NCBI GenBank assembly: GCA_002269645.1
Contig: NIVC01000805.1
Location: 1-64,000 of the forward strand
Direction of reading: 5' to 3'
DNA from: Macrostomum lignano
Taxonomy: Eukaryota
DNA length: 64,000 nt
The notes beneath the pieces are model-generated. The model was given only the letters and a program-made list of their open reading frames with translations. It had not been told where the DNA came from and made no database searches. Within the stretch, counting starts at the first letter, position 1; each line of letters opens with the position of its first letter. Positions 1,962-51,211 of the stretch are shown here, piece after piece. The position numbers and the translations under genes were made by a program.

Positions 1962-2479
1962 CTGAATAGAACTTAGTTCCGTTAAGTTGATTATATCGCT
2001 ACTAAAATCCACTTAATCCAGGGGGTAAGGAATCAGCAAATATGGATGCAATCTATTTGATTAACTGCTTCTTAGTCTTGTAAGAAAGTAAGAAATCAAA
2101 AAGGATTTCGTAGGTAGTCCTATATTATATATACTACCAGATAGAAACGTTCTTTAGACGGAGTCTCATATCGCGAATCTCTGAGATAATGAAATATGAT
2201 TTTTTTCTGAAACTGTTTACTTTCGATCAAACCTATAATAATTTCGCATAGATTTTCTCAAAGAATGACTAACAATCTGGATATTTTGAAGCTTGTATAC
2301 TAAATCAAACAGCAATGTACTGTGTTGTACTTAATCCATGAAAAGCATTCGGAACTATTCGGAATACAGGAAATAAGCAACTCCCACAGTTTTAGTTCTA
2401 GCCCACCGGACTAGCGACCTTATTAGCATAGCATAAGTAAAAAATAGCTTAAAAAAGCATTAATAATCAGTGTACCAAC

Positions 2480-3768
2480 CTAAGTGCCCAGTAGACTCCT
2501 TGCTCCTTCCACTTCAGACAGAACAGACAGCGGAGCACAGCAACGTCAAACAGGGTTGCCGACAGCAGGTCCGGGTTCACTGGGCCCATTGGCATTGAGG
2601 ACACAACTGATGCTAATCGTTGCGCAATCCACTCTTTGTCTATGGGCGATTTGAGCTTCTTTTTTAATCTAGGATCCGAAAACGTCCACGAATAGCGTTG
2701 CGAACTGTTGCATTTGCAGCCCACAAATTCTCCGGACCGATTGTACACCACGGACTGACAGAGTTCGCAGACTATTTCAACATCGGCGCCAGTTTCAGCA
2801 GACATTGCCGACAGCGGGCAGATTTCCGACATGTTCGCCGTTGGGGCCGGCTGTTCACCTCCTACTAGCGTCGAAGGCAAATCGTAGTCGCTAGTGTCGG
2901 CTTCCAGATCCACTGCCGGCACCTCCAGCTGTTCCATGCTGGTGCCTTTGCCAATGTAGATGTGCGCAACGTTGGCTCCTAATCTACGATTGCCTTTTAG
3001 TAGAGATCGCCTCGGCTTAGCCAGACTGCTAAAGCAAGACGCCTCCGGTGAGCGATAGTCCCACATCGCTTGCCAGACGCGAAGGCCGCTCTCCAATTTG
3101 AGCGTTAAAAATTGATCCTCTCTTAGCTCCATAACTAGGGGAGCAAACAGATACACGAATAGTTGCACGGTGCACACACTGTGAATGTACCGGTACTGAC
3201 TAGTTGGCTTGCTGGCTGACGATCCGCCAACTGCTAGGCCGTCGGGGCTGCCGCTGCTACCCGGCATGTCTATGGCAACGGCGCCGCTGTGACCGCTGGC
3301 GCCTGGTAGGCCGCCGCCTGCTCCAACTACGCCTCCGCCATTGGTGTCCTCGTTGTCCTCGCATTCACTAGCTGCGTCTAATAAAATCCAATGCAGCGTG
3401 TATAGCAGTTTGGTCTCGTTGGCGTCAAATTTGCCTTGCTTATGCATTTGATCGTCTGTGAAGAATTTCTCCGACAATATAGTGGCCGCGCAGTGCATCA
3501 CGTGGGGCAGAGCGGCTTGAATCAAGCGCCAACGGCTAATGCTTTGCAGAGCTTCGCACAGCGCCGGCGATTGACTCCTAGTCTGAGCTTGAACTAGCAC
3601 CACTTCGAACTGCTGAGCCGTTGAAGCTCGCTGCAACTGGGTCTGGCTGGCGTTTTTGCTAGACCGAATGAACGGCGTAGTGATTTGCCACAGCCAGCTC
3701 TGCACAGGCAGCGGCAGCCGTAGGTTACCATTCGGACTCGAATCGTTAACGCTTCGTCGCTTCACCAT
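2480..3768 (-). CDS. unc-80: UNC80 (NALCN channel auxiliary subunit), first coding exon; gene continues leftward
   Basis: MVKRRS...LPLPVQSWLWQ...SPALCEALQSISRWRLIQAALPHVMHCAA...ETKLLYTLHWILLDA and FDVAVLRCL match the UNC80 N-terminus. ATG at 3768 (the listed ORF is extended upstream). Donor AG|GTTGGT at 2480/2479. Confidence 0.93.
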
Positions 3769-6700
3769 CGCGTCTTTAAGCCAGATGCTTGGCTGGCTTA
3801 CTAGACTAAACAATTATGGGAGATGTAAGTTGCGATTTTCTGATGCAGCGGCTGCAAGCGCGGCCTTTGCTTGGGGGGCTGCTACTTGTTGACGCTCACA
3901 GAACCAGTTCGCTTGGGCAGAAATCGATAATAAATGTTTTAGAGAACAGGGCACAATATGTATTTGATTTATTCTACTTGAGTGACGATTCTTTAAACAT
4001 AATGAAACAATCACAACTTTGTTTGACTTGATATGTTAAAAAGTATACAGAGGAGGGAATATTTAATACTAAAGTCCAATACATAAAGTGTTGCAATGAA
4101 AGAAAAAGGTTTCTCTGACTTTATGCATCAATTAAATCAAATATTTGTTGTGGATTCGATTTCATTGAGCAAAATTTACTGCAAACAATGACTATTGTAA
4201 CAGTAATAGCAATCTTATTACGAGCTAAGTCATTCTAGAACTTTGAATTATCATGTCTGGAATTTATAGACAGAAGAGCCTATAAAATATGCTATTAAAA
4301 ATTGATAAAGGATAATTAAAGAAAAACTACCTACAGCTAGTTATAATTTTTGTCAGTAACTTTCATATTTATCAGGAGTGAAAAAGTTTTAACATACAAA
4401 TATTTATAGATTAAATAATTTTGAAAAAGGAAAAAGACTATTATTAAAACTGTTCAATCTTGATTTATTAAAAAAAAGCTTTAGAGAATCAAAAATGGAT
4501 CAATAGACGATTTTTTCCATTGGAGTTGAAGGAACAAGAATATATTTTTTCAAACTTTCTAACTAACTAAAATTTTATTAATCTCCTATTACTAAATCAT
4601 ATAAATTTTTTTATAAAATCTTAAATCCTAAAATCATAAATATATTTTTTATTTAAAATATGTACCAATTTGTTATTTGCATTTAAAATTAGAATGCCAT
4701 GCATTTCATAAAACATTATTTGGCATAATCAGTTATTTGTCATTTTCATTGTTAATTCAAGCAATCAAACTGCCACATGCAAACTTGACTACAAGTCCCT
4801 AAATTATTCTCAGCAACCAACTGCAGCAAAAAGAGGGCTTAGAAGAATGTAAAAATCAAAACATAGCAACATATTAAACTATTAACAAACTCTATTAAAC
4901 ATTTCCAAATATATCCTTAAATATCAAGCTGCAACTATACTCGGCTTATAGATTAGTCTTTAACTAATACTGTATAATTAAAACAGTTTTATGTAGTATA
5001 ACTGTTATATATACATAATTTGCATATAAAAATACATATATCAAAACTTTAGATTTATTAGTAAAAAATCTGAGTTGGGTTGAGTAAAAAAACAAAGTTT
5101 AACTAATAACTATAATACATAAAGCAAAGTTTGATCCACAATCCTCAGAGGAAAAGTAGCTCGTAGTATTTATAAAAAATAGTGTTTTTTTATCCCCGTA
5201 CTTTAGATTTTTTTAGACAAGACTTAAGATTCCAATGTGAAACCTTTAAGAAGTACAAACCCTGTAATACTTCTTGCTGCAAAAACCACAAAGGAGTTCG
5301 ACTACAAAGTTTAACTACAAATTAAAAATAAATTTCCCTAAAAATATCGCCTACGCCTAATTTGGGCATACAAACTATCCTCTACATAACTATATTTTTT
5401 TCTCGACAATGCCTTTAACAAAGTTCATGTATACTGCAAACTCATTTTCCAACTGAAAATAAACACTCCACTACTTAATAATTCTCCAAAAGCTACATAA
5501 ATCAAGAAAACTACACGAAAGACATTACGAACCCAAAAAACCACTTATTATAAGATGGTAACGACTCTCTGCAACCTACGTTTCCTTTCGGAGAGTTAAT
5601 AAATTTCAATTGGCAATAAGTAGGACACGAAAATAAAATGGACAACGCGCGATAATTCAGATAAAAAACAAATAAGTTAAACCTTTTGCGTTTAAGAGGC
5701 ATAGTGAAACAAAATTTATTGTTTTCAGTATACTAAGCTACGCACGAAGTCTATTAAATCTCACTTAATCTAACCAATTAAGTAAGAAAAAACTATAAAG
5801 ATGCTTTCCGAACCTATTTCCTGAATCGTTTAAATCAAAGAATCAAGAATCCGTAATTTTTACACTGGCCGGCCAACCTGCCGTCGTCGCTGGCTGGCAC
5901 CGCATGCAAGCGTGAGATTTTATCTTTGAGGATTTTTGAGGCTGTCAACTTAATTATTTGTTTGTGAAAATATTTTTGTTCTAGTGGCAACAATAGTTAA
6001 TTTATGAAATTTTCTAATTATGGGTAGTTAATTTATACTTCTAATAATAATAATATACCTTCATAATCAACAATGACATTGGTTTCAGTGGTACTGTGGT
6101 AGGCCTAGTCTATCTAATTGTATTTGAATTGGAGTCGCATTTTCAATTGTTGCTAAACTTTCAATTTTCATTTATGGTCATACTCTCAAGAATGCTTTTT
6201 TGAGGGATTCTTGCATGTAAAATTTTCCAGGCAGTCATTGGTGTGTGTACATAGGCCCTAGGTAGTGTGCAAAATTTACAAAATGGAGGTTGGGAAGCTG
6301 CAACATGTTTAGGTCCTACACCTCTAGGTCCTATATGTACAGTGTACTGCAGCCAAGAGCTAGAATGCAAAACTGTCAACGCATAGGCCTATGCATTTAA
6401 CACTAGGGATTTTCTTGCTTTGCATACTAGGCCTAGGCCCCCCTACAATAATTCCAATAATAATAAAAATTTACTATTCATTTAAATATATGAAATTGGT
6501 TGATAGATAATCAATTATGTCTATTGTGTTTTTTCTAGTTTCTAGTTCCTTGACCTTTGTCTACTGGCAGTTCATTTGCTAAATAGACAAAAAGCCTATT
6601 AATTTTTTTTATTTATAATTTGTTTGTTTTTTGTTTACTAGGAAATAAAAATAAGAGAGTAAGGCAGTGGGGTAGGATAAGGAGTAGGCTGGGAAGCCAC

Positions 6701-7958: not shown

Positions 7959-9057
7959 ATGGCAAGTTTTTCCATACCACCAAGGCGTCAATTGAGACAA
8001 GTATTACATTGGCTAGCTTATGCTATAGGAATAAGCAGTCTCAGTCTTCTATTGTTATGGCTCTATGCTGGTCGCAATCCAGTGCATTATTTGTACAATA
8101 TAAACTTAGATAGTATAGCTCAACTACACGTGCTGCCATTGACTGTGGCTGGTACAGCCCTCTGCTTAGATGGCACTGCGCCAGCTGTCTATGTGTCCCA
8201 CACTGGGCCCAATTGGATTGTCTATCTTGGCCAGGATTCTCTCTATTGGTGCCTCGATGAAGAGGATTGCTTAGCGCGTAGTCACACGCCGCAGGGTAGT
8301 AGCAAGTGGCTACCAGATAAGCTTGAGCTGCATGGGATATTGTCGAATTCGGCTGAGGTAATTTGATTAATTTGCACTGCTTACAGCTTAACAGCCAGGA
8401 AAGCCTATATCCCGCCCTTGGATCCTTTTTAGAACTTCAGAGTAGCAATCCAGTCTGCTCAAGGTTTGTCTCTTCTCTGCTTCCTAGTTGAATCTCCTCT
8501 CGCTTCTGCTCACTTCTGCTCTTCTTTCCTCTCTTCTCTCCTCTTTTCTTCTCGCTTCTACTTTATTCCCTCGCCTCTCATTTTTCTCACATCTCTCTTC
8601 CCTCCCTTGGCCCGCAGTCATGTGAGACTCGTAAAAAAAGCTCACCGACCCCTGGTCTAATTAATCCTATTTCTCATATATAGGCAGACAGGCAGGTACT
8701 GGGTTTTTTAAGTGTCCAAATTTATTATGCCAAATTGAAAACCAGTATTGCCAGCCGGCATCAGTCAATAAGATCAAAATCAAATTAAACACCAGCATCT
8801 TCGCCCTATCATCTACACTGCTGAGCCTCTCTGACCTACAGAAGTTGCACAAAAGTCTGCAGACTCACTGTTTTTACAAATTACTTAAATTTGACAATGG
8901 GTAGAATTTATTAAAGCAAGATTTGTCACGACACATGCTGTGACACAAGCCTAGATAGGTAGATGGAATTATAGATAGATAGATAGATACATAGATAGAT
9001 AGATAGATACATGGATAGATAGATAGATAGATACATAGATAGATAGATAGATACATG

Positions 9058-9149
<92 letters not shown>

Positions 9150-9150
9150 C

Positions 9151-9185
<35 letters not shown>

Positions 9186-9186
9186 C

Positions 9187-9237
<51 letters not shown>

Positions 9238-9238
9238 C

Positions 9239-9321
<83 letters not shown>

Positions 9322-9327
9322 CATAGG

Positions 9328-9373
<46 letters not shown>

Positions 9374-11172
9374 TTGATTAATTGATAGCTACTTGTTGCA
9401 GCTTCAGCTTATATTTGTGCAAGAAATTGTCATCTCAAATCAATTAGTTATTGCTTTCCTTCCCTTTTTCCCTTATTAGGTGAATCCAGATTTTCACACC
9501 TGGTCCAAAGCTGTAATTCACGCCTGCGACGGTAGCGGCTTTCTAGGCTATAGAGCCGCGCCTTTCCACGTCAACAATCAGGCATTGTACAGTCGAGGCT
9601 ATCACGTGATCTGGCGCGTTCTTGACTGGCTGAGAAGGCGCTATGGCGACAGTATGCAGCCGCACGAGTCTCAGTTTCTATTTGTTGGCCAGGGCTCTAG
9701 CGGTATCGCTTTGATGTTGGCGGCTAGGGATATAATTGACCAGTTTCCTTATAATCGGGTCAAGTTTGCTGTTGAGGGATCTGTGCTCATCGACAAGGAG
9801 GCCGTTTTGATTGACAGGTGCTTTATTTGTATTTTTGTTGCAATAGATTTGTTGTCTTAGTGGACCGCTGTGGTTCTTCAATTCACTCTATTTTACCTAT
9901 AATCTTCTTCAGGTGCTTCAATGATCTTTTATCGCTTCTTCTTAGCGGCCCAGGCTCGATTTCCAGTGCAGTCATTATAGTTTGGGGTTAAATTGGAATC
10001 TCGGCTTGGCTCTGCTCGTGCAATTAATGCCCTTGAGGGCCAATTCCCAAGGCACAGTGAAGTGTACATGTCTAAGCGATAAATAAAGTATGAATGCGTA
10101 CGTATCCGCGCGCTTGTGTGCCTGCTCGTGGGAGTCTACGGAATGGGCAGCCATGCCTCTCGCCGGTTTTGTTGCAATGTCGCTTAAAGTACGGCTGTGT
10201 GCACACAACCCCGTCTTTCCTTAAGGATCTTCAGTGATCTATCAATCCTCTTTTCATCGTGTCATTCAGTGGCTCATCACTGACTTCCTTCACGTGCTTC
10301 AGTGATTTATCACTGATTTTCATTCAGGTCCTTCAGGGATTTATCACCGATTTTCATTCAGGTCCTTCAGTGATCTATCAACGATTTTTATTCAGGTCCT
10401 TCAGTGATCTATCACCGATTTTCATTCAGGTCCTTCAGTAATCTTTCACCGATTTTCATTCAGGTCCTTCAGTGATCTATCAACGATTTTTATTCAGGTC
10501 CTTCAGTGATCTATCACCGATTTTCATTCAGGTCCTTCAGTAATCTATTACCCTTTCCTCCAGGTCCTTCAGTGATCGACTGCCTTCTTGCTTTCAGCCA
10601 CTGCTAACCCTGTAAATACAGATTGTAACTGTCTGTCCGCACCAATTCACAGGCTGCAGGCAATGATTAGCACGCATCACGTGACTAGAAATCCGCGTCT
10701 AAAAGACTGCTTTGAAGAGTTTCCTGAAGGACAGCGTCAAAAAAATTCCTGGCGCTGCCTTCTACTGTCTAATCTGTTGAGCGATCGCATCGATGATGAA
10801 GGAACAAAGGAGCCGGCGTTTTTCTTCTCGGGTAGCAACTACGATAGGTGGCTGGCTATTAACGTGTACGCAGTCGCTTGTCCCCTTATTGACTGTCGCA
10901 GCGACGAGGAGAGCTATGCTAAATATGACCGATTGCGCAATGCCTTAATCGACGCTATCAATCCTATAGATAAGAAATCTAAGCGCGACTCAATCTGGAT
11001 GTGCTCCTGTTGGTCTCGGGGTCACCTGGTGCACGATCAATTATTAACTAGAATCAACGTGGAAGGCTGGTCATTGGCCGAGGCTCTGAAAAAATGGTAC
11101 TTCAATGATCAGCCAATGAAGCTGCATTTGGTTGATGGAGCATTTCCGTCTAATCCTACTTGTCCAGTTTGA
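7959..11172 (+). CDS. Pectin acetylesterase/Notum family (PAE) protein with N-terminal TM anchor, probably catalytically inactive, 418 aa
   Basis: Exons 7959-8357, 9480-9817, 10653-11172 (GT-AG, phases match, 1257 nt). Motifs LCLDGT, GILSNSAE|VNPDFHTW, CDGSGFLG, LYSRG, WRC, SNYD. Hydrophobic stretch WLAYAIGISSLSLLLLWLY. Confidence 0.88.
8396..8654. mobile_element. hAT-type MITE, degenerate copy (PAE intron 1)
   Basis: Right end CCGACCCCTG. Shares gatcctt..aacttca..tagcaatcc, a CT-rich core and tggcc.gcagtcatg with the element at 41242-41978. Left end degenerate. Confidence 0.55.
8951..9372 (+). repeat. (GATA)n microsatellite in PAE intron 1
   Basis: About 100 GATA units with occasional CATA variants. 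Confidence 0.99.
10224..10578 (+). repeat. 34-bp minisatellite in PAE intron 2
   Basis: Unit ttttcattcaggtccttcagtgatctatcaccga, about 9-10 copies. Confidence 0.95.
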
Positions 11173-12078: not shown

Positions 12079-12647
12079 AACCCTCTTTAGAAATAAGTAG
12101 CATATGACGTTAGTAGTGAGTATGCAGAAGGCTACAAAATGTCTGTTCTAGCCCTATATTTTCATCTGCAAATTCAATTTACACAGCGTTTTCAAAATTC
12201 GCATAATGTTTTCCATGGTGCTGCAGTTGTTCTGCTTTAAACAAAGCAAAACTAGCAAATAGCATTTAGTAAAAGACTAATTACTTTTGGACCGAAGCCT
12301 GACATCTGATCTATTTTGAGCTCTCGCAGTAAAACTGTAATATCCGTTTTGACTTTTTTATCGTCTTAGTGCTACGATTAAAACGAATCAGTAAAGAGCA
12401 AGCATTGAGCACAGGTTTGAGTATATTAGAGAATGAAATTCAGTATGCCAGACTGGCTTATCTGCATTCCTGTTTCATATTGTACATAAACTGCTATTTT
12501 ATCTTCAATAAATCTTTTATGGTCAAATATATCTATATGCTTCTATTATAATTTTCATTTGGAACTTCGCTTATTTAAAAAAATCGTCTTTTTAGTTTTG
12601 ATGCAGTTAAAACTGCCACATGCAGTTCAGTCCCTGAGGTCCAATTG

Positions 12648-13631
12648 CCTCTGACTTTCTCCCATCTGACTCTACCATTGACTCTAGTTGTCTCTAACAT
12701 TGACTCTACCATTGACTTTGCTTGTCTCTAACATTGACTCTACCTGTCTCTCATCTGACTCTACCATTGACTCTACCTGTCTCCCATCTGACTCTACCAT
12801 TGACTCTAGTTGTCTCTAACATTGACTCTACCATTGACTTTGCTTGTCTCTAACATTGACTCTACCTGTCTCTCATCTGACTCTACCATTGACTCTACCT
12901 GTCTCCCATCTGACTCTACCATTGACTCTAGTTGTCTCTAACATTGACTCTACCATTGACTTTGCTTGTCTCTAACATTGACTCTACCTGTCTCTCATCT
13001 GACTCTACCATTGACTCTACCTGTCTCTCATCTGACTCTACCTAGACTCTAGTTGTCTCTAACATTGACTCTACCATTGACTTTGCTTGTCTCTAACATT
13101 GACTCTACCTGTCTCTCATCTGACTCTACCTAGACTCTAGTTGTCTCTAACATTGACTCTACCATTGACTTTGCTTGTCTCTAACATTGACTCTACCTGT
13201 CTCTCATCTGACTCTACCTAGACTCTAGTTGTCTCTAACATTGACTCTACCATTGACTTTGCTTGTCTCTAACATTGACTCTACCATTGACTTTGCTTGT
13301 CTCTAACATTGACTCTACCTGTCTCCCTTCTTACTCTACCATTGACTCTACCTGTCTCCCTTCTTACTCTACCATTGACTCTACCTGTCTCCCATCTGAC
13401 TCTACCATTGACTCTACCTGTCTCCCATCTGACTCTACCATTAACTCTACCTGTCTCCCATCTGTCTCTACCATTGACTCTACCTGTCTCCCATCTGTCT
13501 CTACCATTGACTCTACCTGTCTCCCATCTGTCTCTACCATTGACTCTACCTGTCTCCCATCTGTCTCTACCATTGACTCTACCTGTCTCCCATCTGTCTC
13601 TACCTGTCCACCTCCCCACCTAGACTCTACT
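12648..13631 (+). repeat. Composite minisatellite with 122-bp higher-order repeat resolving into a 33-bp unit
   Basis: The tgactctacc core recurs throughout. Identical register points at 12663, 12785 and 12907; later unit ctctaccattgactctacctgtctcccatctgt. Confidence 0.95.
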
Positions 13632-13891: not shown

Positions 13892-19850
<5,959 letters not shown>

Positions 19851-27522: not shown

Positions 27523-29247
27523 ATGACATCGGAGCATCAAGAAGGCTGCAAATTGCGTTTTTGCGATCAATACTCTGCTGGCACTGGTCCATTATCAGGG
27601 CTGCCTCTGTGTCCAATTCATCTAGACAAAGACATAAAGTTAGTCGATAAAAAGAAGACTAAGCTGATGCAGAAGCTTGACGCTGTGGTAGCTATCGAAC
27701 AAAGGCTCCAGTTGAGGGCCGAGCAGAGTTCTTTAGCAGCCGAGCTGCAGGAGGTCAGCGACGCATTTGACTCGCTGCAAGCGCACTTGCAGCAGTGGCG
27801 AGAGCGGACGATGTCTCGAGTGCAGGCGGCGCACGATTCGGTTGCTGGCAGACTCAGAGACGCAGCTGAGGCGGAAGAATGTTCAAAAGAAGTATCATTA
27901 GCAAGTAACGCTGGAGACTGGAAGTCAGTTGCGAAACTGGTATCCTCGTTGAGAATTTGGGTCGACGAGGCGTGTGAACGCACAGAAAAGTTTGATCAGG
28001 TGCGTTCAGAGATTGTTCGTCTCTTTAACGGGACATCTTTGAACACTAATAGTAGTTCAGAAGAGCCGAGGCACCACAATGAGGAAAATCCTGGTTGTTC
28101 CTCTGTTTTACAAAGTGAAAAAGATACTGACGAGTCGAGTAAAGAGACGATTTGTGACCGACTCAACGTTCGATCGATTGGTGACATATCGCTCGGCGTG
28201 CGGCATTTGGAGTATTTGATAGACAGGCACATGAATGAAGTCAATCAGCTGTTCAGGATCCAACTAGTGGATGCTAATGAGCTTGAGAAGTCTCAGGTGT
28301 GCCGTTCTATTGCGACTATCGATGGCCTTCCTGGACAGCCAGGATATTTGGCAGTTTGCACGAACACTGCTGGATTTATGGTCGATACAAATGGCCGTAT
28401 AATTCGATCTAGCTCGCAGAACAGCGGCTGCTTGCCGTTGCCTGAACCTTGCCTATTCATATCATTCTATGTTCCTGACAATGATGACATTGATGAAGTT
28501 CCTATTGTAGACCACATTTTGGTTGCTAGCCTCGATGATGGTGGCGTGTATCAGATGTATCAGCTTAGGCTTCAATGCGATTTAGATTGGAATGATGGTA
28601 TCTGGAGTCTTCACTGCGACAGTCCTCGTCAGCTTTTATACGTGGCTTTAGAAACATCTGTACTTGTCGCTGATCTTAGCGGCAAGTTGTCGCAGAAAAT
28701 CACTGTTGATGATTTACCCATTCTTTGCGAAGAAGTGTGCTGTATCGATGGTGACGCTGACAAGTTATTCATTCTCACCGAGAAGGCTAGTGTTGCGACT
28801 GTGTGCAAGGAGTCCAGTTTGCCTATTTCCACCATTAGCATTTCCGCTCTGGTGTCAGGAAATCTGTCTTCGATGAGTCTTATTGGACGAAATATTGCTT
28901 TACTTGATTACGAATCGAGAAAGATGTATGTTACAAGCAGCATCAGCGGCCAGTTGCTAAGCTTCTATCCCACTTCGAGAACTCAACCAGAAGAGCTTTG
29001 GTATCCACATGAAGCGGCATGCGATGACAGGGGCCTAGTTTTCCAAAGCGACTCCCGAAATATTGTCCGTGTCCTAGATTTTTCGGGGACAATCGTTCAA
29101 AACTTGGGAAGAAAAAACGAGTCTGGATGTAATGCAGAGACATTTAATGGTCCCGACTGCCTATTGGTAGTGCAACTGGCTTCCGGCAGGCGACTGTTTG
29201 TTTCCGACGTTCAAAATCAGCGTATTCGAGTTTTCGAAATTCTCTAG
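27523..29247 (+). CDS. Zn-motif + coiled-coil + NHL/beta-propeller protein (RING-less TRIM-like), paralog 1, 574 aa
   Basis: Intronless ORF. C-x4-C-x15-C-x2-H, heptad region, C-terminal NHL-like FNGPDCL...LFVSDVQNQRIRVF. Confidence 0.85.
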   Translation: MTSEHQEGCKLRFCDQYSAGTGPLSGLPLCPIHLDKDIKLVDKKKTKLMQKLDAVVAIEQRLQLRAEQSSLAAELQEVSDAFDSLQAHLQQWRERTMSRVQAAHDSVAGRLRDAAEAEECSKEVSLASNAGDWKSVAKLVSSLRIWVDEACERTEKFDQVRSEIVRLFNGTSLNTNSSSEEPRHHNEENPGCSSVLQSEKDTDESSKETICDRLNVRSIGDISLGVRHLEYLIDRHMNEVNQLFRIQLVDANELEKSQVCRSIATIDGLPGQPGYLAVCTNTAGFMVDTNGRIIRSSSQNSGCLPLPEPCLFISFYVPDNDDIDEVPIVDHILVASLDDGGVYQMYQLRLQCDLDWNDGIWSLHCDSPRQLLYVALETSVLVADLSGKLSQKITVDDLPILCEEVCCIDGDADKLFILTEKASVATVCKESSLPISTISISALVSGNLSSMSLIGRNIALLDYESRKMYVTSSISGQLLSFYPTSRTQPEELWYPHEAACDDRGLVFQSDSRNIVRVLDFSGTIVQNLGRKNESGCNAETFNGPDCLLVVQLASGRRLFVSDVQNQRIRVFEIL

Positions 29248-30939
29248 TTGTTTTCTATGTGCAAGCATATTTTAACATTTTCTATATGCAAGCATATTTT
29301 AACATTATGACTTTGCGTTTGCCAATTCGATGACAATTGGTACTATAGCTTATGTTCGATTACATTTTAATATCGAACTATTTAATGCTAGTATTTCTCT
29401 TTGTTTTTCAATATTTCGGCACCCTTCTACGCTGCTTCTATATTGTTGGTGCTTATTTATCGCATTTAAAATCAGGCGTCGCAATAAAAAACTATTTTGG
29501 GTAGACTTTTTGACCAAATCTAGTCTTTCTGGACTTTGCGAAATTAATTTGGCTATATTATTCAACTATTTCCTAAGCGTTTTCATTAAATTTAATGGAA
29601 TTATTATTTATGAAGTGCCATAGTTTTGTCACCTTTGAAATTAAAATTTTCGATCATTCTTCAATTGGTGTATCTTTTTTTTAGTTTTGTTATATTTCAT
29701 ATTTAGGCTGAATAAGAGTACATTATACCCTTTGAAGTGTTTTAATGGCATAAGCACGCACTAACTAAGAGTGCAAAGATAATAACGATTTCGGAAACAA
29801 GGTCAAGGGTCTTAACCTACTAAGCCAGGAATTGGTAAAATTTAGATGTGGCGTGTTAGTTTCCCATTGTTTCCTTTTCCGCCGTAGTCTAACTAATTTA
29901 ATTTTGTTACCTTATTAATAAAAATTTACTTTTGCTTTGTATGCTTGTTTTTCCATGTTTAAAGTGGTTGACGATTCCCCCCGTCTCATTAATTACCAAA
30001 TACATTCAAATGCGCGACTATGATGGTTCTTTTTCACTTTTTGGAGCTAACTAAAGGAACGTAACCAGTGCAGCTTAAACTCATTTGTTCACTTTTTGCT
30101 TTTTAGAAAATTAGAGATTTTTACGAAAGCAGCTAAAATGATTCTGTCAGGCCTGTAAGTGTTTTTTTAGAAGCAACCGTGAGTATAGCTCGTGCTCGTA
30201 CAGCCACAGAAAAGTGCCTCAACTACAGGGTTAGAAACAGCTTGAATTTCGTACAGAATCACCAGGAACTGGCTATATATAGTTTTAGCTATAACTAAAC
30301 GCATTAAACGCATTTTTTTTCTAAGAGCGTAGATCTATATAAGCTCGTTTAAGTAATCTTTGATCCAGTGACATATTTCGTCCATGGTTTTTGTCTCTTT
30401 ACTTTTTTTTAAAAACCACCGAGTTTTATCGTTGGCTATGAGGTACTATAGACTGTATGCATATCGTACTGATGCAGATATATTTTTTAGTGGTAGGTAT
30501 CATTTATTTGCACTTGTACTAATGGAGGATTCACCCTAGACATCTGCATAACTAATATTAACTTTAACTTTCGCTGCGGTTAATCAACACGTCACTCAAG
30601 AAGTATTACTTTCTGTCTGTCTTTCTTTCCTATCTGAATTGAACATTTTAGTTAGGACATGAAATGCTCTAAAACGATTATTGATTTGTCAATCTATATG
30701 TTCTTCTCAATTTATAGTATGGGAAAGAAAATGCCGTTATATCGCTAATGCCACATCACACTCAATCAAAAAACTCAGCCAGATGGTAAACCATGCTATT
30801 CCTTCATTCATTTTTACATAGATAGTGACAGCTAAGTGTACCTGCACTTATTGAATAATTTCGTTGGATCTTATGCTACCATTGCCCTAATGTCCGGAAT
30901 TCTATCACTTTCTGAGCAAGTATAACCAACTCGTAAAAC

Positions 30940-32544
30940 ATGCCTTCGAATTCATTAATCCGCTGCAGCTCGCATCGCTGCAAAACCAATTCTGTTGAAA
31001 CTAGTCCATTAAGTGGACTACCTGTGTGCCAAATTCACCTGAACATGCACATCCAAACAGTCGACGAGAAGGTCACGCTGTTTCAAAAGCTTCAGTCAGT
31101 GATGGATCTGGATAACATGCATCTGCTGAGAGCCGAGCAGAGTTCGCTGGCTGCCGAACTACGGGAGGTCAACGACGCATTCGATAAATTGCAAGAGCAG
31201 GTGGAGCAGTGGCGGAAGCGAACGATAACTCGGCTGCAGGTGGCGCACGATTCTGTTGCGGAGAGAACAAGAGACGCAGCTGAGGCGGAAGAATTCTCCA
31301 AGGAATTGTCGAATGCCAGAGACTGGAAGAAAGTGATGGAGCTTACTTCTTCGTTGCTAACGCGCGTTGGTGAAGCGTTTGAACGTACCGAAAAGTTTAA
31401 TCAAGCTCGGACTGATCTTTTCAGCCGTCAAAGCAAACAACAAAGCGTCAGCGATACTGCCAGTATGTTCAGTTCCAGGTCAGTAGGGGACGTATCGTCT
31501 GGTGTGCGCAATCTGCAGTTTCTTCTTGGCAGGCACATGGCTGAGTTGATGCGACAGTGCTGGCTTGACGTTGATAATTTAGAGTCGGCTGATTCAGATC
31601 AATCGGGTCAGATTTGTCAATCTGGTACTACTATCTATGGACTTATTGGGCGGCCAAAGTGCCTAACAGTTTGTACTAATACTGCAGGATTCGTGGGCGA
31701 CTCGTCAAACTGCGTGGCTCGAGCTGGATCAGCTGATTCTGATTGCGTCCCGCTGCCGGAGCCCTGCATCTTTGTCGGTTGTCATGCTCACCGCAAGTTG
31801 TTGGACGGAAGTTTAGAAGTAGATCATATTATTGCCACGTCGCTTGATGGTTCTTTAAGACTGCAGTGTTACATTCAATGCGATTTTGACTGGGAGCTCG
31901 GTATTCATGACCTACACTGCGACAGCCAAAAACAGCTTTTGTACGTTGTCCAGTCTCAGCTAATTACGGTTGTTGATTTTAGTGGTGTAGTGCAACAAAT
32001 TATCGATGTAGAGATGTTTGGTAACATCGAGTTCTGCATCCTTGACGGCAACGCTGATGAGTTGATTACGAATTCTGACTCGTTAACATTTTTGACAATA
32101 TCGAAGAATGATGTAGTATCGAAGCGCCACATCGAATCTTCCTCGTTGCGTTGTACACATTTGGGATCATTTGCTGTCGATGGTAAAAAAATTCACGTCA
32201 TTTATTACGTCGATAATAGGATCTATGCTGTGTGCAGCATTAGCGGCCAGTTGCTAAACGCCTACCCCTCTGCTAAGTATGACGTACTGGAACACTGGAT
32301 GCCGTACAATATAGCTGTAGACAGCAGAGGCCTAAAATTTATTAGCTGCAAGAATCACGTTGTATGCGTCCTAGACTGTTTCGGGACCGTTTTGCAGACG
32401 CTAGGAACTGTAAACCAAGCTGGAGATTGCGAGGAAACCTTCAATATGCCCGACGCACTTCGCTTGATCGAAATGCCTGGTCGCAGATGGCTAGTTGTTT
32501 GTGACGAAAATAATCGACGCCTGCGAGTTTTTAGCGTTGCTTAG
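30940..32544 (+). CDS. TRIM/NHL-like paralog 2, 534 aa
   Basis: Same architecture; FNMPDAL...LVVCDENNRRLRVF. Confidence 0.85.
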   Translation: MPSNSLIRCSSHRCKTNSVETSPLSGLPVCQIHLNMHIQTVDEKVTLFQKLQSVMDLDNMHLLRAEQSSLAAELREVNDAFDKLQEQVEQWRKRTITRLQVAHDSVAERTRDAAEAEEFSKELSNARDWKKVMELTSSLLTRVGEAFERTEKFNQARTDLFSRQSKQQSVSDTASMFSSRSVGDVSSGVRNLQFLLGRHMAELMRQCWLDVDNLESADSDQSGQICQSGTTIYGLIGRPKCLTVCTNTAGFVGDSSNCVARAGSADSDCVPLPEPCIFVGCHAHRKLLDGSLEVDHIIATSLDGSLRLQCYIQCDFDWELGIHDLHCDSQKQLLYVVQSQLITVVDFSGVVQQIIDVEMFGNIEFCILDGNADELITNSDSLTFLTISKNDVVSKRHIESSSLRCTHLGSFAVDGKKIHVIYYVDNRIYAVCSISGQLLNAYPSAKYDVLEHWMPYNIAVDSRGLKFISCKNHVVCVLDCFGTVLQTLGTVNQAGDCEETFNMPDALRLIEMPGRRWLVVCDENNRRLRVFSVA

Positions 32545-34198
32545 ATACTTGAACTGTTTGCAGTTGAGACTTTCTTCGAATTTCATTTGCTAAGTACCGC
32601 ATCATTGTCGCTATCCCTTTCATGCAAACATTGCATTTGTTATAGTTTGCTTTTAAATTTGACTTTAACAAACTCAACGAGCTGTCATTTTCTACCAGGA
32701 TGCTTCTGGGTCTTTGAGGTAATCTCAGAACGCATTTTGGGTATTATTTTTGGGCATGCTATGCAAATACACTCAGCAACATTTTAAAGTTTTCACCAGT
32801 TTATTAGGACTGAGAACTGAGAGTGGAAGCCTTAATCCAACTCTAGCCATAACTCTCCACTATCTCCTCAGCAGCCTAAGCTGGGGCCTTGTGACGGGAA
32901 TCGCTTCGCCCAAAGTTAAGACGAGAAAAAGTTTACCACTGATTTCAGGATATAAACTTGACGTGTTGCTCAGTGTCGTTACTTCTATGTCTGGTTGAAA
33001 CTCTTTATTACCCGTTTTTAAGGAGTAAGCAGTCAAAAGGACTCTAACTTTGATATACTTTACTAGATTTTAGCGCTTATAGCTATCTAATTTTCTGTCA
33101 AATAGCTACTCGTGTGTAAAGTTTAAAATAATCTCCTTTAAGGTAGTTACCCTGTTTAAAAACCTTGATAAGCAATAAATGCTATGCAATTTTAACAAAG
33201 TTTAACGAAAGTTTATTCCCTCGTGTATATTATATTTTGCTTTGAATTTTAAAGCAAGTATTGTTTTTTACTTCCATGTAGTTTTTTCTAAAATTTATTC
33301 CTGCTAGCCAGTTTTACCAGCATTTTACTTTGTAACTATTTTTGTGTTACGTTTATTATTATTTCAATCCCTATTTGTTTAGGATTACTTCCTATGTCTT
33401 CAATGACTTTCTTTTGCCTTTTTATATCGAGTTACATTACATGATCACGACGAGAAAGAAAAAAATTAATATATTTTTTATGGTGTCTCTGGATATACGC
33501 TCGTATATAATAGTTTATGGTATAACTGTTTTTACTTTTGCTGTGTGCTAATATATATGTACAAGTAGAAATTCCAGCTGCAATTAAGTTGACCATAGTA
33601 ATTATCTGGTAAAATTTTACGCCTACCTGTTGACTATTGGCGGTTAAGTATTAAGCGTAGTATTTTGTACTTTTTTATCGCGTTCAAACAAAAAGTATCA
33701 CTAAAACAACTTTTTGTTTCAAGTATACTCGCAAAAGTTCTACCTTTTTGTGTAAACTGCAGTCTGTAACAGCTTTTTTTCCTTCGTAAATTAGCATTCA
33801 TTTCAGATAATATTTTTAGATTAGATTTGCTAGAAATCTGGGTTGGGTTACTGAATGAATAAGGAGATAAAATATATTGCATATTCAGTGGAGTTTTAAT
33901 ATTCTGCACGTTTGTTTAAACTTTTTAACGTGTGTCGTTGACGTTCAGCTTCTGAATAGAGTTCAATTACCTAGATTTTCTATCAATTTACTTCCATCTA
34001 TCTAAAACTTCGCATAAAAGTATTAGGTAGTAGTCTTATTTTGTATCTCTAATTATAATGGCCGAAAAAATCAAGTATATATAATTTTAGGCCACTGAAA
34101 TATATCTTCGTAGACTTTGTTATGCTATATTAGAATTACTAGAAAAACAACTCATTTTTTAATCTATTGATGTCCGATTAAAAATCAAAGTTTTAACC

Positions 34199-35848
34199 AT
34201 GTCAGAAGAAGTTCAGAAATCATGCGAGTCTCGTCTCTGTGGAAACCAGTCTTGTGGAACTAGTCCGTACAGCGGACTGCTTCTGTGCCAGACTTACCTG
34301 GACAAAGACATCAAGCTTGTTGGCAATATAAAGACCGAGCTGATGCAGAAGCTTCAATTTGTGATGACTTCCGAGCACAGGTCTCTGCTCAGAGCCGAGC
34401 AGAGTTCACTGGAAGCTGAGCTGCAGGAGGTCAGTGACGCATTTGACGCCCTGCAAGAGCAGGTGCAGCAGTGGCGAGAACGGACGATGTCTCGAGTGCA
34501 GGCGGCACACGACTCGGTTGCTAGCAGACTCAGAGATGCAGCCGAAGCGGAAGACTGTTCGAAGGAAGTGTCGGAGGCCAGTGATGCTGGAGACTGGAAA
34601 AAAGTGATGCAGCTGACGTATTCGTTTCGGATGTGGGCCGAAGAGGCGCAAGAGCGATCGGAAAGCTTTGATCAGAGGCGCTCAGAACTTTTCCTTCGTC
34701 AGAGCTCGGATTATCCCAATGCTTCATCTAACCTGATCAATAAATTCGGCATGCGCTCAGTTGGTGACGTGACGTCAGGTGTGCAGAATCTGCAGTTTGT
34801 CATTGACAGGCATATGTCTGAAGTCGTTAAACACTGTTGGCTTGATATTGAGAATTCAGGCACAACTGACAGACACAAACCGCCTCAGATATGTCGGTCA
34901 GTTGCATCAGTAGAAAATCTTCCTGGAAGGCCCAGCTGTCTTGCAGTTTGCACCAACACTGCCGGATTCGTTGGCGACTCGTCTGGCTGCGTTGCTAAAT
35001 CTGAGTCAGCTGATTCTGGATCTGAGCCACTGCCACAGCCCTGCGTCTTTGTTGGCTTTTATGCCCAAGTGCAAGATGAACAATCCGAGTCTGAAGTGGA
35101 AGTGGAACCTGTTGATTATATTCTTGCTATATCTCTTGATGGAGATCTGAGGTTGAAGTGTCGTTTCAACTTGACTGGCTTTGAATGGCAATCGGATATT
35201 TGGGACTTGCACTGTGACAGTGAGCGGCAACTTCTGTATGTTTCTCAGCCTAGCTGTGTAGCTGTCGTCAATCTTAGTGGTGCGGTGTATGAAGCTATCA
35301 TAGCTGATAGTTTCAATGATCTAGATATTCAATTTGGCTTCATTGACGGTAATCAAGACAAATTGTGCACCTTTCACGACCGAAACCTATTTTCGCTTTC
35401 TAAGAATGATTTGAGTTCTGATGGCATTGTAAGCACTTCCTGCTCTTTTGAACCTAAGTCACCCGACGCTAATGGATTTCTTGTACTAGCTGGAAAAAAT
35501 ATTCACATTTCTCGTGATAGCAATATCAGTATACTGTGCAGAATCAGCTGTCAATTGCTAAGCGTGTATTCCACAATTCGGACTGTTCCTGACCAATTTA
35601 ACCTAAATGGCCTGGCTGTTGACAGCAGGAGTGTGAGGTTCTTTAGTAGTACTGTTTACCATACGGTAACTGTTTTGGATTGTTTTGCTAATGTTCTGCA
35701 GACTCTTGGATCCGTTAGCAAGCCTGGAACTGACGAAGAGTCTTTCAATTCGCCTGGTGCGCTTTGCATTGCAGAGCTGGCAGACAGCAGGCGCCTGATT
35801 GTTTCTGATGAGAATAATCGACGGCTACGAGTGTACGAAGTCCTGTGA
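34199..35848 (+). CDS. TRIM/NHL-like paralog 3, 549 aa
   Basis: Same architecture, with the last Zn ligand His changed to Tyr; FNSPGAL...LIVSDENNRRLRVY. Confidence 0.85.
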   Translation: MSEEVQKSCESRLCGNQSCGTSPYSGLLLCQTYLDKDIKLVGNIKTELMQKLQFVMTSEHRSLLRAEQSSLEAELQEVSDAFDALQEQVQQWRERTMSRVQAAHDSVASRLRDAAEAEDCSKEVSEASDAGDWKKVMQLTYSFRMWAEEAQERSESFDQRRSELFLRQSSDYPNASSNLINKFGMRSVGDVTSGVQNLQFVIDRHMSEVVKHCWLDIENSGTTDRHKPPQICRSVASVENLPGRPSCLAVCTNTAGFVGDSSGCVAKSESADSGSEPLPQPCVFVGFYAQVQDEQSESEVEVEPVDYILAISLDGDLRLKCRFNLTGFEWQSDIWDLHCDSERQLLYVSQPSCVAVVNLSGAVYEAIIADSFNDLDIQFGFIDGNQDKLCTFHDRNLFSLSKNDLSSDGIVSTSCSFEPKSPDANGFLVLAGKNIHISRDSNISILCRISCQLLSVYSTIRTVPDQFNLNGLAVDSRSVRFFSSTVYHTVTVLDCFANVLQTLGSVSKPGTDEESFNSPGALCIAELADSRRLIVSDENNRRLRVYEVL

Positions 35849-37891: not shown

Positions 37892-40800
37892 ATGAACGAC
37901 CGTTTGATTTTATTATTCGCTGTCTTAATCGCCGGATGTCTGGTCTGGCCTAGCGGCACTGCTCAGCTACATTTGACACCAACTCAGAGGCCGAATTTTA
38001 TAATCATCTTGACAGATGATCAAGACAGCTTGTTGGGTGAGTGAAGAAAGACGGAATTCATTATTTGAGAATTCAGTAGGTTCACCTAGCCCTGAGAATC
38101 TCCCCCGATAATCTTAACTACCCTTGAGAATCTCCCCCGATAATCTCGCCTACCCCTGAGAATCTCTCCCCCAATAATCTCACCTACCCATGAGAATCTC
38201 CCCCGATAATCTACCCCTGAGAATCTCCTCCGATAACCTCGCCTACCCCTGAGAATCTCTCCCCCAATAATCTCACCTACCCATGAGAATCTCCCCCGAT
38301 AATCTACCCCTGAGAATCTCCTCCGATAACCTCGCCTACCCCTGAGAATCTCTCCCCCGATAATCTCACCTACCCATGAGAATCTCCTCGCCTGATAATC
38401 TACCCCTGAGAATCTCCCCTGATAATCTCATCTACCCCTGAGAATCTCTCCCCTGATAATCTCATCTACCCCTGAGAATCTCTCCCCCGATTATCTCACC
38501 TACCCCTGAGAATCTCCCCCGATAATCTACCCCTGAGAATCTCCTCCGATAACCTCGCCTACCCCTGAGAATCTCCCCCGATAATCTCACCTACCCATGA
38601 GAATCTCCTCGCCCGATAATCTACCCCTGAGAATCTCTCCCCCGATAATCTCATCTACCCCTGAGAATCTCCCCCGATAATCTCATCTACCCCTGAGAAT
38701 CTCCCCCGATAATCTCATCTACCCCTGAGAATCTCCCCCGATAATCTCATCTACCCCTGAGAATCTCCCCCGATAATCTCACCTACACGGACTACTTAAT
38801 TGTAATCCGTGCTCACCTACCCCTGAGAATCTCTCCTCCAATAATCTCACCTGGGAATCTCCCCTGATAATCTCTCCCCCAATAATGTAACCTATCGCTG
38901 AGAATCCCTCTTGATTATCTCATCTACCCCCGAGAATCTTCCCCGTTTATCTCACCTACCCCTGAGAATCTCTCCCCCGATTATCACACCTACATTTGAA
39001 AGTCTCGGCCCCTGATCTCACTTGCCACTGAGAATTGCCGCAATCTTAAGAGCTTTGATAGTATCATTGGCAGTACAGAATGTATAAGGACATTTAGTGT
39101 CAGTTATAATATAGAAAACTTTCCAATGTCGCTAATATACTTTAAGGAGAATCAAATAATTGGGTCTTGACGAGTTTAGATTTGTTAAACTTTAACAGGC
39201 AGCCTCGAGGTGATGCCCCATCTGAAGCGACACCTCACCGACAGAGGTGTCAACATGCAGCGAGCATTCGTCACCACTCCAGTGTGCTGTCCATCCCGAT
39301 CCTCCATGCTCACTGGCCAGTACGTGCACAACCATCGCGTGTTCACCAACAATGAGAACTGCACCTCGGCGACTTGGCGTCGACAGCACGAACCCGTGAC
39401 CTTTGGCAAACAGTTAAATGACGCCGGTTATCGAACTGCGTATATTGGAAAATACCTGAACAAGTGCGTTCAATATTAACAGCTGAAGGTTTGTAGGCAC
39501 CCTGGCGCAACGCCTTTTGCCTATTCTGCTGAATCCTGAGCACATTTAAGTGTCCCCAATACTGTACGCGGGCACACACGCGGGCACACAATGAATGTGG
39601 CGCGAGAGTCAGCACCCAACAAGTTCGTTTTGATTTTTAGCCATTTGTGTACTGTCTGAATGTGTTTAATGAAACACGCAATTGCTTCTACTTTTAGTAG
39701 TTAAAAACATATTTGCTAGAATTTTAATATAATATTATTTAAAACATCCATCCTCCATTTTGGCGATTCTTAACTTAACCAGAGGTAAGAAACTTGGTCT
39801 GACTTTTTGCCTCGACAATCTTTGGTTTGAGAATTTCATTCTTGAAAATCTGATAATTTTCTTTTGTCGTTGAGTATCTGAATTATCTCAGAATTTCAAG
39901 ATGATACATTTCACCTCGGATAATCTCAAACATCTATCATGATAACTCTCATAGAGATTTCACTCCTAATTATCTCATTCGGGAATACTGCCGTGGTCTG
40001 CAGGAATTTCATCCTTGCCAATCTAAGAATCTCACCTCAGCGGCGATTTTAACCCTTAGAATCTCGTCTTGTGAATCTCAACCCTGAGAATCTCAACCCT
40101 GAGAATCTCAACCGTGAGAATTTCACTATGATAATCTTTAACCCTAACGAATCTCACAGCAGAGATTTGCATATTTTTCGCTTATTACATGTAGCTGTTT
40201 CAGCACCTGAGCATCGCCCAAATCCCGCGCAGATACGACGGCACCTACGTACCACCTGGCTGGGACCGCTGGCTCGGCCAGGTGAAAAACACCAAATTCT
40301 ACAACTACTCGGTTAACGAAGACGGCCAATTGAGTTGGCACGGCGCTAACTATTCGCGAGACTACTTCACCGACATCGTCACTAATCGATCGCTGGACAT
40401 CCTGCGCGAATGGACGTCCGGCGGTGACGAAGCCGGAGATCAACAAGCTCCGTTCCTCCTGGTGATGAGCTACCCAGCGCCTCACGGGCCAGAGGATGCG
40501 GCACCGCAGCATCAGTCTTTGTTCGCAAACGATCACCGGCACAAGACCGCCAGTTACAACCGAGCTCCCAGCCCGGACAAAGAGTGGCTGCTGAGGCGAG
40601 CGCAACCTCTGACACCGTTGCACCAACGTTTCACAGACACGCTTCAGCGAAAGCGTCTGCAAACTCTGCAGAGCGTCGACGAAGGCCTCCGACGCCTGTC
40701 GGATTGGCTCGACTCGGAAAGTTCGTCGGAAATTTCTAACAACACGTTCGTGTTTTACACCTCGGATCACGGCTACCACCTGGGCCAGTTCGGCCTGCTC

Positions 40801-43706: not shown

Positions 43707-44295
43707 TGGTTTCTTAGAAACGCTTGATCTTACGCTCGTATTATCGATCGCGTGATTGCGAATAATTAAAACAAAATTCATTTTTTGATCAGAATGCAAA
43801 GCCTTTTATTATCGGACCTAAATCTATGTTGATTCTAAATGACGTACATCATTATGTTAATTTTAATTTTTACTGCCTATATGGAAGACGCAATATTTCG
43901 ATTTGCACTCATGTAGTTCAAAACCGCACTCATTTAACTAATGAAATGTCACTATGAATTGATTCCGATTTAAAATATGATTTAATTAAAAAATTGCGTA
44001 CTGCACACTTAACAACCTATTCTATATCGCGACCCATTCAGTATTTAATCGAATAAAACAAATCTGTGTTCATCGAATTTCCAATTTCACAGATGCGTCA
44101 TCAGGTTGAAAATAACCTGAAAACCCATAACTGCTTTTTAACGGTTTTATTTAGAGAAAAATATATTTAACTACAAATATGTTTTACTATTAATTTCAGT
44201 AGCATTATTTGAACAATATAATTTTTTTAAGTAGAACAAAACAACACATGTTTGCATGCAAATGCGACTTTCAATTGTTTATTCATAATTTTGGC

Positions 44296-44700
44296 CCTGT
44301 TACACCTTGGCGCTCTGTGACACCTTGGCGCCCTGTGACACCTTGGCGCCCTGTGACACCTCGGCGCCCTGTGACACCTTGGCGCCCTGGGACACCTTGC
44401 CGCCCTGTGACACCTTGGCGCCCTGTGACACCTTGGCGCCCTGTGACACCTTGGCGCCCTGTGACACCTTGGCGCTCTGTGACACCTTGGCGCTCTGTGA
44501 CACCTTGCCGCCCTGTGACACCTTGGCGCCCTGTGACACCTTGGCGCCCTGTGACACCTTGCCGCCCTGTGACACCTTGCCGCCCTGTGACACCTTGGCG
44601 CCCTGTGACACCTTGGTACTCTGTGACACCTTGGCGCTCTGTGACACCTTGGCGCTCTGTGACACCTTGGTGCCCTCTGATACCTACGAGTATTTTAGCA
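44296..44700 (+). repeat. 18-bp minisatellite
   Basis: Unit tgtgacaccttggcgccc. Confidence 0.97.
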
Positions 44701-45519
44701 CCATCTGACTCATATTTTAGCGCCGTTAGACACTATTAGCGCCACCTGATACCGGTTTTAGTGTCCTATAACACCTTGATTCCCTCTGACACCTCTCTCC
44801 GGAACCTTTCTTGGCGCTATGGTTTTTGTTCTGATATTGGTTTGACTTGCTCTATGATCCTTCTACGAAACAACATGATAGAATAGCAACCTATTTACAA
44901 GACTTTACTGATGTGCAACCAAGTAAACAGCAGATGCTTGGGGTAGTGCTACAGTCTGGTCTCTGGATCAAGAGTGACTGACTATGCTTTAATTACAAAT
45001 TAAATGCCTTTGCAGAGTTTCTGTCCTTGGATACACGCGCCTGAAGTTCGGTGAAAGCGCATCCATCAATTTAAATAGAATTGTTGGGAGAATCCACTTC
45101 AAGTCTTTTGATCGAATGAGAGCTTTTTAGGGGTGTGTATAATATATAAAGGAGGAATGAAAGTTGAAAGAGCTTCATATAGAAAAAGATTGACTCACTA
45201 CTTTAACTCATTTCTCTCACTAAACTATACTCAACAGGCACTTGGGCGCGTGTGATATGCGATTTGAATAGAAATAGAATAGAATAAGCGCATGATGGTT
45301 AAGTGAGTCTATGGGGATGAATGCTGGTCCTTCTTATAATATAGGCCCGGAGTCACTGTTGGTTGTTTGTCAAGTGTCCACTAGTAGAGCCAGCTGGTGT
45401 GGGAAGCGGCTACCCTCAACCCCGACTTTTCCCAAGACTGCTAATGTATATAGAGTCAGTGTCTGGATTGGAAACACGGACAGCGAGACAAATATTCTCA
45501 AAAATCCTCCCTTCTGCAC

Positions 45520-50785: not shown

Positions 50786-51211
50786 TCCTATCCTCAAAAT
50801 TCTGAATCCTCCTAACTAATCTACTTCAATATACGAGCGTATGAAGCCAGGTGACTTAAAAAGCCATAATTTGGGGTCCTTGTTAAAGTCATGTGTGGCT
50901 ATCAGAATATTTAAGACTTGAACAAAGAATGGATCAAAGCTGCTTCATGTATTCAATCTGATCTGAGCAATTTGATAGAGGTCTTTCTGTGAGCAGAGTT
51001 TTCATTGCGTGTCCAAAAGTCACTAAAAATCTTGGCAGAAATTTTGTCAAGTCAAAATAAGTTTATCTCCCAATGCTCACGAATATTTAGAGTTCCACAT
51101 CTGTTACGCCTTTTTTCAAAATATCGAATCAGTCAGGATACTAGATTTTTCTGGTCTGTGTTTCTGTTATCTCTCTGCAACTGTACGCGAGTATCTCTAA
51201 CTACGAGTATG

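Follow-up and report, generated by a model that had tools for sequence, protein, structure and literature searches.

Does a flatworm gene of the pectin acetylesterase (PAE)/Notum family still encode an enzyme, and if it does not, why is its reading frame intact? The gene lies on the plus strand of a 64,000-nt stretch of the Macrostomum lignano genome (hereafter the window, whose numbering is used throughout), where 418 codons and a stop form one open frame from 7959 to 11172 across three exons with GT-AG introns. We found that the predicted protein has the fold of its family and has lost the nucleophile serine, the catalytic histidine and the oxyanion loop, and we consider it probable that it is a pseudoenzyme, a PAE/Notum fold that is dead as a catalyst and nevertheless retained. 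The PAE family and pseudoenzymes, which are common, are both already known; a family member without its triad is what is new here. A literature search returned no paper joining pectin acetylesterase with pseudoenzyme and none describing a triad-less PAE protein.

The assignment to the PAE/Notum family, made in an earlier note on this DNA, is firmly grounded. The Pfam PAE profile (PF03283) matches the protein with 123.2 bits (E = 1.8e-35; cut-off 26.6) over profile positions 9-352 of 355, and a profile built from the flatworm protein and 47 homologues matches human Notum at 6.8e-60. The AlphaFold model computed from the 47-homologue alignment has a predicted local distance difference test score (pLDDT) of 90.4 and a predicted template-modelling score (pTM) of 0.86. 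When this model was compared with the Protein Data Bank (PDB) by Foldseek, the best 50 matches were all structures of Notum, the only family member with a solved structure (E about 1e-20; target-normalised template-modelling (TM) score 0.74-0.82, or about 0.8; identity 18-20%). The CLDG motif (residues 69-72) is kept, as are the conserved cysteines C69, C98, C104, C149, C265, C281, C322, C365 and C416, and the sole conserved cysteine to have been replaced is C329, by Ser. The protein is thus an alpha/beta-hydrolase domain of the pectin-acetylesterase (CE13)/Notum superfamily. Its motifs are placed as follows.

8001..8069, plus strand: predicted signal-anchor/transmembrane segment, residues 15-37 (Kyte-Doolittle; model helix 8-37)
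8163..8174, plus strand: CLDG motif, residues 69-72, retained (motif defined in PMC5465549)
8229..8252, plus strand: degenerate oxyanion loop G91-Q-D-S-L-Y-W-C98, with a two-residue insertion (alignments)
9687..9704, plus strand: nucleophile elbow G203-Q-G205-S-S-G208 (alignments; DSSP of the model)
10837..10851, plus strand: Asp motif N308-Y-D310-R-W312, retained, followed by Leu313
11002..11025, plus strand: His loop C363-S-C-W-S-R368-G-H370, with Arg368 at the catalytic His position

We read the catalytic positions from four independent alignments, using the residue roles described for human Notum (PMC8172013) and the plant PAE motifs ClDG, GGgwC, GCSxG, NxayDxwQ and HCQ (PMC5465549). The four were a phmmer alignment of 150 homologues, a MAFFT alignment of 67 full-length homologues, a second MAFFT alignment with full-length sequences (A1) and a query-free profile, which was built from homologues alone and then used to align the flatworm protein to human Notum. 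All four place Gly205 (GGC, 9693-9695) at the nucleophile Ser232 of human Notum, Arg368 (CGG, 11017-11019) at the catalytic base His389, and Asp310 (GAT, 10843) at the acid Asp340, which is therefore kept. They also agree in setting Gln92, Asp93 and Ser94, together with a two-residue insertion (from 8232 on), at the oxyanion residues Gly126, Gly127 and Trp128, such that the loop GG(G/A)WC has become GQDSLYWC and a column that is 98% Gly holds Asp93. Ser206 aligns with Ala233 of human Notum, which supplies an oxyanion amide. Further changes flank the triad: the Gln three residues past the triad Asp (the NxaYDxwQ motif) is Leu313, and His370 stands at the Gln of the HCQ motif. Both the Ser and the His are present in 64 of the 67 full-length homologues. 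The earlier note had called the nucleophile Ser to Gly at 9693, the catalytic His to Arg at 11017, the oxyanion motif lost and the Asp of NYD retained, and each of these calls agrees with all four alignments.

Predicted structures lead to the same assignment. We compared the secondary structure (DSSP) of the flatworm AlphaFold model with that of an intact Lingula homologue modelled identically. In the flatworm model a strand (199-204) ends just before residue 205 and a helix (206-221) begins just after it, which makes Gly205 the single strand-turn-helix residue of the modelled elbow; in the Lingula control Ser226 is in the same place, between strand 219-225 and helix 227-241. Asp310 comes directly before helix 311-316, as Asp326 comes before helix 327-332 in the control, and Arg368 lies five residues past strand 359-363, as His381 lies five past strand 372-376. 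As modelled, then, the three canonical triad positions hold Gly, Asp and Arg in secondary-structure terms.

The protein had also been described as membrane-tethered, and the sequence does contain a predicted N-terminal hydrophobic anchor. Residues 15-37 are its only strongly hydrophobic stretch (best 19-residue Kyte-Doolittle window 1.85, at residue 15); they come after Arg9, Arg10 and Arg13 and form part of helix 8-37 in the model. In the closest homologues a similarly hydrophobic segment lies 40-60 residues in, which is too far from the N-terminus for a cleaved signal peptide, and the PAE-like family therefore looks like one of type II membrane proteins, whose esterase domain would lie outside the cytosol.

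The gene that encodes this protein is built as follows.

7959..8357, plus strand: exon 1, codons 1-133, with the ATG at 7959 and a GT donor after 8357, a junction also found in public models; it encodes the putative short cytoplasmic tail, the membrane anchor and the start of the PAE domain
8358..9479, plus strand: intron 1 (GT-AG), holding a (TAGA)n microsatellite at 8952-9373
9480..9817, plus strand: exon 2, codons 134-245 plus 2 nt, with the NPDF and CDG motifs, strand beta5 and the nucleophile elbow
9818..10652, plus strand: intron 2 (GT-AG), holding a 34-bp x 10 tandem repeat at 10229-10577
10653..11172, plus strand: exon 3, codons 246-418, with the stop at 11170-11172

The public protein PAA86706.1 (P0003, BOX15_Mlig020310g1, 418 aa) has identical splice junctions and a single difference, P7T, and a UniParc entry of 369 aa (P0001) is 100% identical to the window protein and has its junctions in common. 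The intact three-exon open reading frame (ORF) claimed earlier is accordingly confirmed, with 418 open codons and GT-AG junctions that match public models. Of the GT-AG combinations, only one gives a frame that fits the family alignment; acceptors at 10598 and 10622 were ruled out as alternatives, as they require non-GT donors. The GenBank models of the M. lignano assembly go back to an RNA-seq-guided transcriptome, in whose assembled transcripts the coding regions were called with TransDecoder (PMC5730564). That a model of this origin carries the same junctions speaks indirectly for transcription and splicing of the locus. The identifier BOX15_Mlig020310g1 was not found in the papers or supplements searched, and exact-sequence look-ups for transcripts or other assemblies had neither P0001 nor the exon-3 ORF on record. 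As to the introns themselves, the (TAGA) microsatellite of intron 1 comprises about 105 units and the 34-bp unit of intron 2 occurs about 10 times; the copy number of the latter apparently varies among genomic copies, as many offset BLAST matches fall there.

The distribution of the losses across the protein bears on why the frame is open. We defined conserved columns as those at least 80% conserved among the 47 homologues, of which there are 58. The flatworm protein keeps 43 of these, including 10 of the 10 that are invariant across the aligned family. Losses affect 6 of 9 columns in active-site motifs versus 9 of 49 elsewhere (Fisher p = 0.006), so that 40 of the 49 conserved columns outside those motifs are kept. 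Because the losses are focused in the active-site motifs while the columns of the fold are kept, the pattern suggests a retained dead fold rather than a decaying gene. Three of the remaining mismatches, Tyr148, Ser153 and Phe236, sit in the conserved segments YCDGxS and GxFLD, which we suspect line the cleft. The catalytic motifs have taken at least seven replacements and one insertion, which imply that much time has passed since inactivation, yet the 418-codon frame is open despite the longest branch in the tree and the fold is confidently modelled; a gene drifting for so long would not be expected to show either. Comparison of sequences thus lends indirect support to purifying selection as what may maintain a catalytically dead fold.

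We propose that the protein crosses the membrane once, in type II orientation, and that its portion on the luminal or extracellular side would be a well-folded alpha/beta-hydrolase domain. Ester hydrolysis by the classical serine-hydrolase mechanism would be impossible for such a domain, and the gene would be kept by selection for a non-catalytic role. Most likely, the remnant of the substrate cleft would bind a ligand or partner at the membrane surface, in the manner of neuroligins or GID1. Neuroligins, gliotactin, the ChEL domain of thyroglobulin and plant GID1 are non-catalytic proteins of the alpha/beta-hydrolase fold, in which, as in the flatworm protein, the fold is kept and catalytic residues are replaced. 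They are often membrane-tethered and use the fold for binding. They come from other families (cholinesterase-like and carboxylesterase-like) and share only the fold with the flatworm protein.

Several observations weigh against a dead fold kept by selection. Literature and supplements yielded no expression level, tissue or binding data for the gene. There is no orthologue with which to compare it: a HMMER search of 1.84 billion representative proteins gave nothing above 31% identity, a word-indexed search returned the flatworm protein itself plus one match at 26% identity and nothing else, and no flatworm protein is named among the top 20 matches. M. lignano assemblies contain the gene in three copies, whose exons and introns are equally close to one another (99.5-100% identity). 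The two other genomic copies (L001 and L002) differ from the window by one non-synonymous and two synonymous substitutions, and, with exons and introns equally near-identical and three substitutions only, a ratio of non-synonymous to synonymous substitution rates (dN/dS) from these copies has no power. The coding sequence of L002 (NIVC01000245.1) has two 1-bp deletions, at the equivalents of window positions 8239 and 10885, and its public model is a 152-aa fragment (P0004). Finally, Ser206, Ser207, His370 and Asp310 all lie near the old active site, and the presence of Ser or Thr at the position after the nucleophile (+1) in every Ser-less homologue could mean a shifted nucleophile instead of structural compensation.

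Some of these points would be expected if the gene had been recently disabled and were on its way to becoming a pseudogene, transcribed, open by chance and without function. The lack of any orthologue above 31% identity, the damaged L002 copy, the longest branch in the tree and the lack of any N-glycosylation sequon in the protein sequence all fit such a course. Against it stand the concentration of losses in the active site, with the conserved cysteines and most other conserved columns kept, and the number of changes in the catalytic motifs, which imply that inactivation is old in a frame that is nonetheless open and a fold that is confidently predicted. The two deletions of L002 also fall in short repeats, TCTCTC in one case and CCCC in the other, where indel errors are common in a long-read assembly such as this one (presumably PacBio); they may be assembly or sequencing errors, or may mark decay or a frameshifted duplicate. 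On balance we regard a pseudogene in the making as unlikely.

The residues that remain near the old active site suggest another alternative, an esterase whose site has been re-registered: the nucleophile would be Ser206 or Ser207, the base His370 and the acid Asp310, and the oxyanion hole would come from a remodelled loop. The earlier note had itself raised such a shift as a caveat. The order of residues along the chain invites the idea, given that Ser206 and Ser207 directly follow Gly205, that His370 is two residues past Arg368 and that the Asp is kept, and it gains from a comparison with the few homologues that also have no nucleophile Ser. The exceptions among the 67 full-length homologues are three echinoderm proteins, from a crinoid (Anneissia japonica XP_033102667, P0015), a sea urchin (Diadema setosum XP_072169053, P0036) and a sea cucumber (Holothuria leucospilota KAJ8049785, P0052), in which Ser is replaced by Ala or Gly, His by Glu or Asn (or a gap, in P0036) and Asp by Asn or Glu. 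A partial match, P0104, likewise has no nucleophile Ser. All Ser-less homologues carry Ser or Thr at +1, compared with 5 of 136 Ser-containing ones (two further rows of the +1 table are alignment artefacts). Their elbows read GTASGG, GTGSGG, GTGTGA and GCASGA, and that of the flatworm GQGSSG.

Several points speak against a working site in this new register. The alignment is gapless and matches on both sides of the elbow, and the model has residue 205 as the sole elbow residue, with helix C starting at 206 as in the intact control. The small-x-Nu-x-small pattern of a nucleophile elbow would read Q-G-S-S-G if centred on Ser206 and G-S-S-G-I if centred on Ser207; judging from alpha/beta-hydrolase structures, either would put a bulky residue where a small one is required. 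The oxyanion Gly, too, is Asp93. Moreover, the echinoderm proteins carry the +1 hydroxyl and have Glu or Asn at the His position. Because these proteins have no His at all, we read the +1 Ser or Thr more simply as a replacement N-cap for helix C. A re-registered esterase is, in our estimation, improbable.

The echinoderm proteins resemble the presumed flatworm pseudoenzyme in family, in the change of Ser to Ala or Gly, in the +1 Ser or Thr, in the loss of His and in the N-terminal anchor. They differ in having also lost the Asp and in having Glu, Asn or a gap at the His position, whereas the flatworm protein keeps Asp310 and has Arg368. In a neighbour-joining tree the trio forms its own clade adjoining amphioxus proteins, apart from the flatworm protein; the tree is crude and the flatworm branch long. 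A common origin with the echinoderm clade was rejected on this separation, and the triad losses would therefore be independent. With members in a crinoid, a sea urchin and a sea cucumber, and thus in more than one class, the echinoderm lineage looks old and unrelated in origin to the flatworm gene, and it offers a precedent within the family for the persistence of proteins without Ser and His.

A further possibility, drawn from the earlier note, is that the protein is a dead Notum tethered to the membrane, where it would bind palmitoleoylated Wnt and act as a decoy or carrier. To our knowledge Notum is the only characterised animal member of the PAE/Notum esterase family; it is a secreted protein, a drug target and a key factor in regeneration polarity in flatworms. 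The flatworm protein has its fold in common with Notum and a predicted membrane anchor, which is as far as the proposal is favoured. Human Notum gave no phmmer match to it, Drosophila Notum scored 26 bits compared with 142 bits for a Lingula PAE-like protein, and human Notum is 19.6% identical to it, ranking 67th of 68 by identity in a 68-sequence alignment. On these grounds the protein is, by sequence comparison, a member of the superfamily but not an orthologue of Notum. Its best matches are uncharacterised PAE-like proteins with 29-31% identity and up to 142 bits, among them Lingula anatina 'pectin acetylesterase 5' (XP_013416559) and proteins from Branchiostoma (XP_066301633), Haliotis (XP_071112886) and Montipora (XP_068714660). 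Relatives with a predicted membrane anchor of type II span brachiopods, corals, amphioxus, molluscs and echinoderms; the nearest ones are thus PAE-like proteins from invertebrates of the sea and not Notum.

In domain span, cysteine pattern and N-terminal hydrophobic anchor the flatworm protein resembles the PAE-like proteins of marine invertebrates, but GxSAGG, the catalytic His and the GG(G/A)WC loop, all present in them, are lost in it. Notum (PDB 4UZ1, 4UZQ and 4UZK) shares the superfamily, the fold (TM about 0.8) and the triad Asp; its Ser232, His389, Gly126, Gly127 and Trp128 are Gly, Arg, Gln, Asp and Ser in the flatworm protein, at about 19-20% identity, and it is secreted, whereas the flatworm protein is predicted to be membrane-anchored. 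Plant pectin acetylesterases (CAZy CE13) belong to the same Pfam family and have ClDG and NxaYDxW in common with it; their GGgwC, GCSxG and HCQ motifs, which hold the oxyanion glycines, the Ser and the His, are all degenerate in the flatworm protein, which, unlike them, comes from an animal and has a predicted type II anchor. Residues aligned to the pocket mouth of Notum and to its oxyanion residues, such as Trp128, are replaced, and nothing links the flatworm protein to Wnt. Along the segments that form the palmitoleate pocket, the alignment with Notum is too weak for individual residues to be assigned. In a recent survey of Wnt components in flatworms, notum paralogues are dealt with on their own and the M. 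lignano PAE-like gene goes unmentioned. The framing of the gene as a Notum thus finds no support, and we judge a Wnt decoy very improbable.

An artefact, in which catalytic residues were miscalled or sit in a missed alternative exon, can hardly be the explanation even in a genome assembly that is highly redundant and has indel errors, given that the three independent copies do not differ at all in exon 2, that the differences in exon 3 (one synonymous site in L001 and L002, and a 1-bp deletion in L002 only) leave the catalytic codons untouched, that the family frame admits one GT-AG combination only and that the introns are filled with simple repeats.

With the protein taken as a probable pseudoenzyme, its significance concerns both the family and annotation. 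Beside Notum, animals have a distinct group of PAE-like proteins that is unstudied and putatively membrane-anchored, and in some of these, the flatworm protein and the echinoderm clade, catalysis appears to have been lost independently. This widens the picture of the PAE family and points to proteins that may capture ligands at membranes without acting as enzymes. A practical consequence is that work on Wnt signalling and regeneration in Macrostomum should not annotate the gene, or read it, as Notum. A bolder generalisation, which we hold only tentatively and think unlikely, is that the PAE/Notum fold has been converted on more than one occasion into a membrane-anchored non-catalytic binder: in the flatworm, in the echinoderm clade, which looks old, and in one or more other lineages. 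Were it true, these proteins would make up a class of pseudo-esterases not described before, which would capture acylated ligands (O-acetylated glycans, or secreted proteins with a lipid modification, such as Wnts) and not cleave them, and the recurrent Gly/Ala-Ser/Thr elbow would be the signature of that class.

The rest of the window is eukaryotic DNA with introns and microsatellites, and an Rfam scan of it found nothing. A large exon at 2467-3813 (minus strand) encodes the N-terminal domain of UNC80 (Pfam PF15778, E = 2.5e-61), a subunit of the NALCN channel complex. Three tandem and apparently intronless paralogous ORFs of 534-574 aa lie on the plus strand at 27523-29247, 30940-32544 and 34199-35848; the first and third, the one pair compared, are 43% identical. 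Their N-terminal half is coiled-coil-like and the C-terminal part weakly resembles the NHL repeats of Thin/TRIM71 (E = 3.9e-6); across 27523-35848 these ORFs have no Pfam match and no RING finger was seen in them. Exons of a sulfatase gene are found at 40282-41214 (plus strand; Pfam Sulfatase, E = 5.4e-25) and probably also at 42972-43706 (plus strand), an ORF that is rich in basic residues and has no Pfam match. On the minus strand at 57973-60390, where GC content is high (63% at 58-60 kb), lies an 805-aa ORF for a C2H2 zinc-finger protein whose sequence includes long tracts rich in Gln, Pro and Ala. Long tandem-repeat arrays occupy 12644-13608, 17744-18268, 44209-44739, 51005-51652 and 60438-61886; these five arrays are open in more than one frame, so that ORFs as long as 482 aa there are spurious, and GC skew shows strong excursions at the same places.

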